From positions 434,001 through 498,000 of the forward strand of contig JBBPEB010000032.1 in NCBI GenBank assembly GCA_039096225.1: a DNA stretch of 64,000 nucleotides, given 5' to 3'. Positions within the stretch are counted from its first letter, which is position 1. Each line of letters starts with the position of its first letter. A program made the translations under genes and the position numbers. Below, one piece after another: positions 1 to 60,631 of the stretch. The stretch comes from Blastocystis sp. Blastoise (lineage: Eukaryota; Protista; Bigyra: Opalinata). The notes under the pieces were generated by a model, which was not told the origin of the DNA, did not search any database, and saw only the letters and a program-made list of their open reading frames with translations.

Positions 1-2228
1 ACAAATATATAAATATAAAATATAATCATAATCTTAATAATAATATATATAATTACGAATAATTTGTTCATTAGAAATATTATTATTTGAGGGGTTTTGG
101 TTATGAATACAGGCACTTATATTGGATATACAGAAACGAATAGAACTCTATATATATGTATATATATATGCTGAAATATAAACATAATAATAATAATAAT
201 AATAATAATAATAATAATAATAATAATAATAATAATAATATTTATATACCTTATGAAAATCAAAATCTTGTCGAAGTAAACGTGTGAATGAACATATTTC
301 AAACAATATATATAAGTATTCTAAGGGTAGTGAAGAAGGTACTGAAGGGTAGGGAGAAAGAAGAAGAGAAGGCTTATATAATAATAATAAATATAATAAT
401 AATATCAAATATAATAATAATAATACATATAATAATATATGCATACCTTAAGTAATGTATATAGTTCTTCTAGTTGTTCATCAGTAATAAATATTTTATG
501 TATATATTTATTTAGTAAATATCCACTTCTCTTCATAAGTCCTTTTTCTTGGCATTGTAAACCAAGTATATATATAGAGAAACAAACGTCATATGTATTC
601 TCCATTGAAGAAAGAAGATTTGTATATCTATAACATAAATATATATATATATATATATATATATATATATATATATATATATATATATATATATAGTGAA
701 TAGTAAATAATAATAAATGTGATAATAATTATAAGTCTATATTTACCTATATATAGTTTCTTCAAGAATAGAAATAACAAACACATGCTTATGGGCAGCA
801 TAATCGCGGTTATTCGAGAAACACATTAACATATTCACAACAAATGGACCCATAGAATCTATATATATATATATATATATATATATATATATATATATAT
901 ATATATATATATATATATATATATATATTTAAAAAAAGTAATGCAACCAATTTAGATATAATAATAAAAAAAAATAAAACAATAATAATAATAATAATAA
1001 TAAACATTATAATAATAATGCTATATACCCTTCAATGTTGAGTCTCCAAATACAGATATTAAATGATAAAGAGCTTCTATATATCTCCATGTATATTTCG
1101 AGTGATCCCCGCGGGGATCAGCAAGATTTTGTTGAAGTTGTTCTAAGAGTAATGTAACATAGCTACCTACTTTTGTAGGATTATTCTTTAATATAGTTTG
1201 TGCCAATTTATAAACTTTTGTTTGATAATCATATATATCAATGTTAAGAGATAAATCTTCAGATAAATCAAAATTTTCAGGGAACCTATATATATATATA
1301 ATATTATGTAGATTCTAATTGAATCAATAATAATTTAAATAAATAAAATAAAATAAAATAAAATAAAATAAAATAAAATAAAATAAAATAAAATAAAATA
1401 AAATAAAATAAAATAAAATAAAATAAAATAAAATAAAATAAAATAAAATAAAATAAAATAAATAATATATATATACATCATTTGTTGAATAATCGAGTCC
1501 ATGACAGAAGGGAGAAGAGATAGAGAAGGGAAGAGAGAGAGGAAATAAGGTTGTTCAATATGACTGCAATAATCGTGGAAATGAAGGAAAATTAATAAAG
1601 AACGAGTAGAATAGATTTAAAATAGAATAAAAATAGAATAGTATAAATATGAAAGGATATAATTAATATTTCAAGAACAGGGTATACACAGGGTGAGGGA
1701 TAAAATGTGACTTTCCCAAGGAAATCGAGAGATATAGAGAAATAAATAGAAAGAAGAGATGCAAGACGATTATCAGCCTGTATAATAAATGGAATAATAA
1801 ATATAATGATAAAATAATATTAATAAAAAAATAATAATGATAATAAGTAGAAAATAAAAATAATAAATAGAATAATAAAACATAATAATAAATAGCTATA
1901 TATAATATATACATCATTCTTAATAAATACATGAAATTGAGCCAGTTCATATCCAATAATATTAATCAGTTCCGCTAGAATAACAAGGAAGTCCATATCA
2001 ATATCTACAGGAGAAGAGAAAGAAAGAGAAGGAGAGAGAGTAGTATATATAGAAGGTAAGAAGTTAAAGAAGAAGAGATAGTTGTATATATAGAAGGAGA
2101 GAAATAAATGTATTAAATATAATAATAAAATATAGAATAATAATAATAATAATAATATATAAAAGATATATATTGAGTAGAATGAGACAGTTAATCTTAT
2201 CATCTAGACTCATACCTTTATCAATTAT
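1..2228 (-). CDS. XPOT: Exportin-T (Xpo-t/Los1) tRNA export receptor; multi-exon, runs off the left edge; N-terminal ~250 aa not found
   Basis: Hand-spliced exons match exportin-T motifs in order: IIDKGMSLDDKIN (cf. VVNKGMDPVDK), DMDFLVILAELINIIGYEL, TWRYIEALYHLISVFGD, HVFVISILEETIYRY, GLQCQEKGLMKRSGYLL, YILFEICSF. Confidence 0.75.
1575..1660 (-). other. U12-type AT-AC intron in XPOT
   Basis: Perfect donor ATATCCTTT and a ...TTCCTTCATTTCCAC end. Phase-0 removal restores the frame EILI|DYCSHIEQ, which aligns to CYDYLHILKQ of exportin-T. Confidence 0.8.
2043..2169 (-). other. Probable U12-type AT-AC intron in XPOT
   Basis: Donor ATATCTTTT, branch-like TTCTTTAAC, acceptor TAC. It keeps KGM..DK in frame with DMDFL at the expected spacing. 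GT-AG alternatives delete conserved residues. The exact AC could shift by 3 nt. Confidence 0.6.
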
Positions 2229-2261
2229 CTATATATAATAATAATAATAATAATAATATAC

Positions 2262-2960
2262 TATAGCTATCATCAACTTTATTTATTGAATATATTATAA
2301 AAGTCTTCACAAAAGCCATTAATAAAATGAGATGAATTCGATATATATAAGTCAAAATATTTATGGTAATTCTGTAATATTCATAGACATATACAGAACA
2401 GACTCTATATATACATATAAAAAATAATATGTATACTAAGTATAATAATAATTTAAGAAATAGGTATAATGATAATAATATATATACAATCATTTCACTA
2501 TTATTACAATCTAAATAACACCCCAATTGTGATTTAGTAATACAGAAAGAACGGTTTCTAACAAACTATGTTAATAATAAAAAATATAATAATAGTAATA
2601 ATATACAGTTTATTAACCTTCAACAAATAGTGCTTTATTCACGATTATATATAGAAGAATTGAAAAAGAGACATACCTATAGAATAAGGACAGTAATTAA
2701 GGAGACTATATATATATTAAGAGTAACTATTATATTTATATAAATAATATTATAATAAATAAAAGAATACATAATAATAATATAATCTATATCTTCATTT
2801 ATTGTGTTCATTAACGAATATTCTTTATGATAATAGTGTTCATTTTAAAGCTCTTTCTGTAAGTGACATTAATTGTTTTTGTATAGATATATAGAATAAG
2901 GAATACTATCAAGAGACTAAGTATAAGAAAATTGAGAAGACAAAGAAGGTATTGAAATAC
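2262..2960 (-). pseudogene. Degenerate exon-like remnants between XPOT and the transposase 3' end
   Basis: Blocks are flanked by GTATAT donors and TATAG acceptors, but no splicing solution gave a stop-free frame joining the XPOT exon at 2228. Confidence 0.35.
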
Positions 2961-58088: not shown

Positions 58089-58269
58089 ATTGTAGTCTAT
58101 CCTTAAGAATTCATTTCTTGAAGATTCTCTTAACATTTTTAACTTTGTATTTTGTTTGTTTGTTAGTTTTGTATATTTATTTATTATTTTTGATAAAAAT
58201 AAGGTACATTCATAAAAAACAACAGTAAATAACACTATGCTATAATAATATAATGAATAATAGTGAGGT

Positions 58270-60631
58270 CTATTTTTGATTTAAATAAGGAATTAGTGAA
58301 TTCATAGATATAGTTTCTTGTTGCATTGTCTGTAAATTCTTTATTCGAATCGAATCTTCTTTATCATCTTTTGATAAAAATATACAATATTTACTACAAC
58401 CAGAAGTGATTATCTATATTAATTATTTAGTGTAATGATAAGAAATTATCTAAAGTTTATGAATGAATATACTTTTAATGCTTTCTTGATATTTGTATTA
58501 TAATTAATATATGCTGGAATATTATGATTTCTTATATACTATAGATATATTAATATATATATAGTTATGTAGAATTGTAAGTATACATGAGCAAGAGAGA
58601 GTTGTTTTTGACGTAAAATCGATATACATTCAGGAGTGTCTGATTTGTCAACTTGACAAATAATCTATATATATTAATATAATAAACTTAGTAAATAATA
58701 ATGATATTATTGATAATACTATTAATAATAATATTGATAATATTATTAATAACGATATTATAATAGTGATTATATACAGTTATTCCATGATGTTCTGATG
58801 GAATTAATTCTTCGCGTGCGACCGTTAAAGCAACCCTCTCAACACCTGCTGACCAACCAATAGAAGGAAGAGGATTCTTATAATTAAGTGACGCCGATAA
58901 ATCATATCTACCCCCTGCCTATATATATATATATATATATATATATATATATATATATATAATTATATATATAATTATGTTTACTAAAGAATAATAAATT
59001 AACAAAAAATGAAAAATAAAGCTAATTGAATACTTATATATAAAATAATAATTCTTATGAGTTTATATATACAAGAACAGTAATATTTTCTTGATTAATG
59101 AATTCAAATGTAGTATGTTGATAATAATCTAAACCCCTCACTAAATGAGGGTCTGATTCTAACGGCAACGAATAGGATGAAAGTATAGAAAACACAGTTT
59201 CAAAATACTATATTCAAATAAGAATCAACCAAAAAGAATATCATCATATATATAAATGAATAAAGCATATAACATATATACATATAATTATATATATACC
59301 TGCTTTGAATAATTATTGAATGAATTTATCATCAACGGTGCATTCTTAATAATTTCTTGATCTTCTATCTCTTTACTATCTAATATACGAAGGATACTCC
59401 CGCGGGAATAACGATATTGACTCTCTTTGGATAAAGAATTTATATGAGTAGACATATAATTCTATATATAAAATAAACAAATATGAATATATATAAATAG
59501 ATACTTTTAATGTTCCATAATAATTATTCATACTTTCTCGATCCCCAAGGGAATTTATATGTATTTTAATCCCTTTATCTATATGTAAATCTTGCATAGT
59601 TTTCCAATTCATTAATATTAACTATATATATATATGTTGAAAGAAATATATATATATATGTTGAAAGAAATATTTATTTTTATATATATGTTGAAATAAA
59701 TAAATAAATATATATATATACATCAGCGTCAATATAGGGATTTTCTTCACCAATATATTCCCCGCCAAATTGAGTGAATTGGCGGTAACGACCCTTCTGA
59801 GGGCGTTCATATCGAAATACTGGTCCATACTAGAAAATAATAAGTATAATATATATATATATATTTTTATAAGTATAATAATAAATATTTATAATAAGTA
59901 TAATAAGAATTATAATAATAATAATAATCAATATAAGATATAAAATAAATAATAATATATAATAATGAATATAATAAATATACATAATAATATTTCTGTG
60001 GTAACGACTGTTGATAATTATTATTTAATAAAGCTCTATTTACACCTATATATATATATATTATAATATAAAAACAATAATATATATACCAGCTGTGTAC
60101 TCCGGTCGTAAACATATTTCTTCATCTGATTTATCTTTGAATTCATACATTTCCTTGATAAATAATAAAATAGAAAATAAAAGAAAAAAACAATTAAATA
60201 AAAGCAATAATAAATTTAAAAAATATATATAAATAGCCTTTATGACTTACTTTATGCGTAATATCAGTGTTTTCTCCAACTGTTTTTACAAACAAAGATT
60301 TCCTTTCAACAATTGGTGTAAATAAATTAAGAAACAAGTAAATCGAAAAATAAATAAGTGAAATAAAAATAAGGATATGTTTCCATATGTTCAAAACCGG
60401 ATAGTTCTGCATTATTACTCATTATTGAAATAATTTGTTTCATTAAAGATACTTTATTACACGTTACATTTAATAAAAATAATCAAATAGAGACTAAAAG
60501 GATATTTTACTATGTAATTTCATTTCTTCTGGCATAATATCATTCATCCCACGGACAGATGTGATTGTTGCTATTGATCGACATAAAAAATGTGCAGATT
60601 TGTTTTGTTGCTTCAGAATTTTTACAAACAT
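58270..60631 (-). CDS. hisS: Histidine-tRNA ligase, bacterial-type, organelle-targeted
   Basis: Presequence, then [67 protein letters not shown]. Confidence 0.93.
60318..60378 (-). other. U12-type AT-AC intron in HisRS
   Basis: Donor ATATCCTTA and end TTTCTTAATTTATTTAC. Removal restores HMETPIVE. Confidence 0.88.
60435..60505 (-). other. U12-type AT-AA intron in HisRS
   Basis: Perfect donor ATATCCTTTT and end TCTTTAATGAAACAA. It gives the 20-residue P-to-G spacing of bacterial HisS. An overlapping GT-AG option adds 4 aa. Confidence 0.7.

Follow-up and report, generated by a model that had tools for sequence, protein, structure and literature searches.

Six introns with AT donors, found in a 64,000-nucleotide stretch of the genome of Blastocystis sp. 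Blastoise, an isolate from the tortoise gut, are very probably genuine U12-type introns whose T-containing signal variants are tolerated through G·U pairing, with their density and the dominance of the AT-AC subtype being traits of the genus and the stretch itself a local peak. The stretch, called here the window, corresponds to contig C21:434001-498000 and has a GC content of 23%, the genome comprising 33.3 Mb in 34 contigs with 23.1% GC. The introns belong to an exportin-T-like gene (two introns), a VPS15-like gene, an importin-alpha gene and a bacterial-type HisRS gene (two introns). The paper on the genomes of the tortoise isolates (PMC12129017; Genome Research 2025) does not mention U12 or minor splicing.

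All six segments were found on the minus strand where a preliminary description of the window had placed them, and each begins with ATATCYTT. The donor ATATCCTT is present in three introns (at 1660, 60378 and 60505), and the donor ATATCTTT, which differs by a single C-to-T change at +6, in the three others (at 2169, 17219 and 24671). The exportin-T-like gene contains an AT-AC intron at 1575-1660 (86 nt, phase 0), with the branch-like motif TCCTTCAT 6 nt before AC, and another one at 2056-2169 (114 nt, phase 1), with the branch motif TCTTTAAC 7 nt before AC. The AT-AC intron in the kinase domain of the VPS15-like gene at 17149-17219 (71 nt, phase 2) and that of importin-alpha at 24434-24671 (238 nt, phase 0) carry TCTTTAAT at 7 and 9 nt before AC, respectively. 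In the HisRS gene, the AT-AC intron at 60318-60378 (61 nt, phase 2) has TTCTTAAT 8 nt before AC, and the intron at 60435-60505 (71 nt, phase 0) has TCTTTAAT 7 nt before AA. The termini are therefore AT-AC in five of the six introns and AT-AA in one, the latter being among the known non-canonical 3' ends of minor introns. The dominance of the AT-AC subtype and the adjacency of two minor introns in HisRS, as initially described, were borne out, and so was the occurrence of TCTTTAAT or TTCTTAAT 7-9 nt ahead of the 3' end in four of the six introns; with the acceptor of the second exportin intron corrected from 2043 to 2056, the motifs TCTTTAAT, TTCTTAAT or TCTTTAAC are found at this distance in five introns, the sixth being TCCTTCAT at 6 nt.

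The excision of each segment joins open frames (phases 0, 2, 2, 0, 2 and 0 in the coordinates of the preliminary description), while reading through the retained segments leads to a stop codon within 9-105 nt in all six cases. As alternatives, every in-frame GT/GC-AG pair able to join the same flanking frames was considered. None exists for 1575-1660, and for the other five introns the best alternatives have a combined splice signal score of -9 to 7 versus 16-20 in the confirmed introns; the only well-scoring GT/GC-AG alternative was ruled out, as it would remove a conserved armadillo repeat of importin. The signals GTATAT...TATAG, characteristic of the major introns of this genome, are missing from all six. 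Thus, the claim that six AT-donor introns are needed to restore the frames is confirmed by the sequence, the open frames and the lack of a credible GT-AG alternative; the donor, the branch site near the 3' end and the termini are those of U12-type introns, and these signals point to a dependence on the minor spliceosome.

Transcript evidence was obtained for the HisRS gene, the region of which was recovered by the RNA search in two runs from separate studies, X1 and X2, the latter being a polyA metatranscriptome. The Logan contigs of both runs, placed on 55001-61000, have two gaps, one of 61 nt (60316/60378) and one of 71 nt (60432/60504). The sliding range of the joint is 3 nt for the 61-nt gap and 4 nt for the 71-nt gap; the claimed boundaries fall within these ranges, and GT-AG cannot be placed at either joint. 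The exon between both introns (60379-60434, minus strand, 56 nt) is included in the spliced RNA contigs, and its translation continues the HisRS N-terminal region. Nine GT-AG introns of the gene are present in the same contigs, so that 2 of its 11 introns are U12-type; being contigs, these data attest to the presence of the spliced form and not to its level. The enzyme is of the bacterial type, its top PDB matches being bacterial enzymes (E=6e-12) of about 420 aa. The RNA contigs also carry HisRS sequence upstream of the conserved RGMND motif (60506-60720, minus strand), and this extra N-terminal stretch resembles a presequence for organelle targeting, attached to an enzyme of the bacterial type. 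A U12 intron is also present in human HARS and HARS2, which are of the eukaryotic type.

The exportin introns were verified with P0005, a deposited NCBI protein of 570 aa with the Pfam Exportin-T assignment, which bears the Blastoise name, as does the model P0001, and is identical to the window translation in 253 of 253 residues. The joining of exons was made only in local scripts, in the frame checks and in the identity check with P0005, the homology searches being run exon by exon. The fit of P0005 requires the introns 2056-2169, 1778-1912, 1575-1660, 1286-1476 and 859-1028; among its junctions, 1575-1660 is exact, and the second exportin intron becomes 2056-2169, ending with ...TCTTTAACTTCTTAC, where the acceptor follows 7 nt past the branch motif. 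Of the intron initially drawn as 2043-2169, the donor at 2169 therefore stands and the acceptor does not, since P0005 fits only 2056, which is 13 nt away. The version with the 2043 acceptor is also in frame, but its branch motif is then 20 nt from the acceptor, and the upstream frame initially assumed for the exon was probably wrong. Because introns backed by RNA-seq were given priority in the published annotation of the tortoise isolates (PMC12129017), P0005 provides indirect transcript support for the exportin introns. Both AT-AC introns are used in this deposited model, so the expectation that standard predictors would mis-annotate all these genes did not hold for it, though P0005 begins at an internal Met at 2203, immediately preceded by a stop codon, with the U12 donor 34 nt further downstream.

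The label XPOT is weak: the Pfam Exportin-T match has E=0.007 for P0001, and a precomputed PF19282 match is available for P0005; the search with the 97-aa exon against protein representatives found no distant exportin homologues, and the short exportin exons had no Pfam matches. None of the models includes the N-terminal, Ran-binding part of the exportin, and its exons could not be chained (2170-3400, minus strand). The protein P0001 (461 aa), which starts at the first Met after 1575-1660, has 100% identity to P0005 over 90% of the length (window 34-1574) and is recorded on another contig (2,163,988 bases, as contig C16) than P0005, and this pair suggests a recent partial duplication of the exportin-like gene.

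The importin exons flanking 24434-24671 were searched singly against PDB sequences. Residues 2-46 of the upstream exon align to 3wpt_A 35-79 and residues 1-61 of the downstream exon to 81-139, so that the 47-residue exon ends at residue 80 of 3wpt_A and the next one begins at 81, with the same arrangement in 5h43_A and 7n8j_A. The VPS15-like gene was so labelled from exon-wise matches to Pkinase, VPS15-like helical and WD40 domains. Its intron sits in a variable insert and is supported by the frame, the signals and the lack of a usable GT-AG alternative, with a stop codon after 9 nt of read-through and the best GT/GC-AG alternatives scoring near -9, as compared with 16-20 for real introns.

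The minor-spliceosome machinery was sought in the genome with the use of Rfam models, as had been proposed in the preliminary description, and all four small nuclear RNAs (snRNAs) were found. U11 (62.9 bits) and U6atac (63.8 bits) score above the Rfam cut-offs; U12 reaches 46.8 bits (cut-off 53) and has the branch-binding GAGUAAGGAAA intact. The U4atac candidate (contig C8:151033-151167, minus strand; 29.7 bits, far under the Rfam cut-off) was accepted because its nt 1-13 are complementary to nt 37-49 of U6atac (13 bp), with both strands of the pairing differing from the Rfam consensus sequences. The candidate also contains an Sm site, AGUUUUUGA, and an additional match resembling stem I, AUGCUGAC. 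A C-terminal match to PDCD7 (59K) was obtained with 25 bits. The 5' end of U11 reads AUAAAGGGC, and both this end and the U12 branch box are canonical apart from one A-to-U change, with no compensatory changes for the T-variant signals in either of them. U6atac is a single-copy gene at contig C21:544821-544937 (minus strand), about 46.8 kb past the window end, the sole other near-match to its core having a mismatch and being equalled by a control match. It reads GCCGAGAGAAGG versus the consensus AAGGAGAGAAGG, that is, GCCGAGA in place of AAGGAGA, so that the canonical AAGGA box, which pairs with donor positions +4 to +8, is missing and neither donor variant is complemented. In a shifted register the duplex energies are near those of the consensus, which proves nothing. 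Accordingly, the compensatory snRNA changes envisaged in the preliminary description were not observed, the pairing regions of U12 and U11 being canonical but for the one A-to-U and the U6atac change being non-complementary.

In the proposed mechanism, modelled on the established course of U12 splicing, the ATATCYTT donor would be bound by pairing with U11, and the TYYTTAAY branch site, located 6-9 nt ahead of the acceptor, by pairing with U12, after which U4atac/U6atac·U5 would join and U6atac would displace U11 at the donor. Where donor +6 or the branch motif has T, a G·U pair takes the place of a G-C pair with U11 or U12; T-for-C signals could thus be read through G·U wobble by unchanged U11 and U12, and AT-rich variants would be tolerated without compensatory changes in these snRNAs.

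The density of the minor introns was assessed by a gene model with a 3-periodic Markov chain for coding sequence and splice matrices seeded with 13 RNA-confirmed GT-AG introns and retrained on its own predictions; a first model, based on codon usage, had been dropped, as it over-predicted (about 330 introns, with merged genes). All 13 seed introns are recovered by the model, which is not an independent test; the two U12 donors of HisRS are recovered as well, and the downstream exons of P0005 are reproduced independently. Within the window, 125 GT-AG introns and the six U12 introns are called, so that 6 of about 131 introns, or 4.6%, are U12-type, in agreement with the initial hand count of about 6 of 120 (~5%). 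An extra U12 call at 29078-29299 (minus strand), in a ClpB/Hsp104-like gene (26142-30205), was false, as it would delete a conserved ClpB segment; the ATATCTTG there is coding and mimics a U12 donor, and the real intron is GT-AG and begins after ...DEYRN. The genome was sampled in fifteen 10-kb stretches (150 kb), drawn from 15 contigs at a fixed coordinate, where 247 GT-AG introns and 6 U12 calls were predicted, about 4 of the latter being credible (1.6-2.4%).

A model-free scan for bridged open reading frames (ORFs) gave 4 hits in the window versus 1 in the reversed control. Genome-wide, the pattern ATATCCTT...TYYTTAAY...AC occurs 613 times versus 291 in the reversed control, and ATATCCTT alone 4,815 times versus 4,333 in the control; its occurrences are called as donors in 3 of 30 cases in the sample versus 3 of 6 in the window. 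The donor combined with any branch motif within 600 nt had no discrimination in this AT-rich genome (46 real versus 37 reversed), and for the ATATCTTT donors the reversed-pattern control failed (732 real versus 1,103 control), probably owing to the similarity of the reversed motif to TATAG-type major acceptors, so no excess was drawn from it. Together, these data suggest about 500-2,000 U12 introns genome-wide, or 1-2.5% of all introns, whose total was extrapolated from the sample to be about 55,000. By this estimate, the window, picked for its richness, is about two to three times richer than the genome average. Thus, of the lineage-specific expansion initially proposed from the value of ~5%, the window figure stands, and the extension of this value to the whole genome is not supported; the comparison of 4.6% in the window and 1.6-2.4% in the sample with 0.9% in Blastocystis ST1 allows a range from no expansion to about 3-fold. 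The major introns of the window and the sample are uniform, with GTATAT at 207 of the 372 predicted donors, TATAG at 262 acceptors and a median length of 97 nt. No GT-AG U12-like introns were found among these 372, such introns being hard to recognise here given the similarity of the major donor GTATNT to the core of the U12 donor.

The enrichment in minor introns and the dominance of AT-AC, initially taken for a novelty of the lineage, have already been published for the genus (PMC5608401, PMC10639083). Thus, Blastocystis ST1 has been reported to contain 346 U12 introns, all four minor snRNAs and seven specific proteins (Gentekaki et al. 2017, PMC5608401), which makes about 0.9% of the approximately 37,000 introns implied in total by the published figures; in the survey of Larue and Roy (2023), 253 U12 introns were found in Blastocystis, 77% of them AT-AC and 49% in phase 0, the median length being 39 nt (PMC10639083). 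The Blastoise isolate is similar to Blastocystis ST1/ST7 in having hundreds of minor introns (about 0.7-0.9% there), the AT-AC dominance, the four minor snRNAs and no bias against phase 0 (49% there and 3 of 6 here in the coordinates of the preliminary description). It differs in the T at +6 in half of the donors of the window, in a genome with 23% GC, and in the length of minor introns, whose median is 39 nt in ST1, whereas they span 61-238 nt here, matching the longer introns of the isolate; the density in ST1 may be equalled here or surpassed up to threefold.

The U12 introns of animals and plants share with those described here the /RTATCCTT donor, the TTCCTTRAY branch site near the 3' end, the lack of a polypyrimidine tract, termini of the AT-AC or GT-AG kind and the U11/U12/U4atac/U6atac machinery. 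However, GT-AG is the main subtype in animals, at a density of about 0.3%, while AT-AC/AT-AA is essentially the only subtype found here, and the donor-pairing box of U6atac is altered. The C-to-T relaxation of the signals, pointed out in the preliminary description, is known in mammalian U12 introns, such as the human HARS donor GTATCTTT and the branch sites TCTTTAAY of MSH3 and IK (PMC6717393, supplement). The share of minor introns amounts to 0.27% in Rhizophagus, which was called comparable to human, and 0.55% in Basidiobolus, with Physarum far above the others (Larue and Roy, PMC10639083). Physarum polycephalum is likewise a protist with a high minor-intron load and non-canonical termini (bioRxiv 10.1101/2020.10.12.336362), but its branch motif has changed to TTTGA and its U12 snRNA carries compensatory changes to match, while the U12 box is unchanged here, and the load here is estimated at about 10^3.

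Several points weigh against the interpretation of the six introns as U12-type introns of a genus-wide kind in a locally rich window. The transcript evidence extends only to the HisRS and exportin introns; U12 and U4atac score under the Rfam gathering thresholds; the donor-pairing box of U6atac is not the canonical one; the ORF-bridging scan of the sample gave only 5 hits versus 3 in the reversed control; and the genome-wide share was estimated from 150 kb by means of a home-made gene model, with imperfect controls. It is very improbable that the six include segments other than minor introns, namely annotation or frame artefacts, retained coding sequence, or AT-AC introns spliced by the major spliceosome. 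The VPS15 intron, which has neither RNA nor tight homology support, the non-canonical branch motif TCCTTCAT of the exportin intron 1575-1660 and the one false U12 call of the gene model in ClpB speak for such a case. However, four of the six junctions are present in transcripts or a transcript-based model and a fifth is exact by homology, all six combine the U12 donor heptamer with a branch motif that lies 6-9 nt ahead of the 3' end, none has the major signals, and retention would truncate essential genes.

The opposite deviation, that the tortoise lineage has expanded further, with at least about 5% of all its introns being U12-type and the window typical of the genome, is considered unlikely. 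It would agree with the proportion in the window itself (6 of about 131), and the strict motif class catches only one of the six window introns, so that the excess of 613 over 291 could scale well beyond 1,000. The sample, however, gives at most 1.6-2.4%, its ORF-bridging signal is barely above the control, the frequency of ATATCCTT is little above that of its control, and the share of its occurrences called as donors in the sample is far from that in the window. An intermediate proposal, possible though doubtful, is that the tortoise lineage has about 1,000-2,000 minor introns (2-4%), spliced with a U6atac that lacks AAGGA, by which position +6 is left unread and drifts to T; if true, this would be the highest minor-intron density reported outside Physarum.

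With the six introns read as U12-type introns of the kind known in the genus, what is new is the description of minor introns in the tortoise lineage, with their greater length, the frequent T at +6 and the odd U6atac box, and possibly a somewhat higher density; current knowledge is not overturned, as the phenomenon is in print for the genus. Minor introns make up less than 0.6% of introns in almost all surveyed eukaryotes, and Blastocystis is among the few lineages where they are common. The long AT-rich introns of the tortoise isolates, as against the 30-nt introns of their relatives, offer a within-genus comparison of the gain, loss, conversion and signal drift of minor introns, and the annotation pipelines for these genomes must permit AT-AC junctions.

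Other loci were also noted. One open frame of 3,927 codons extends over 35259-47039 (minus strand) within a predicted coding sequence of 12.3 kb with few introns, and no U12 intron was found in this gene. Two intronless-looking genes of bacterial-type alpha-L-rhamnosidase are located at contig C21:403303-404250, about 30 kb upstream of the window, and contig C22:914083-915030, in open frames of 856 and 790 aa, respectively, in agreement with the two copies, acquired by horizontal transfer, that have been published for the isolates from the Russian tortoise.

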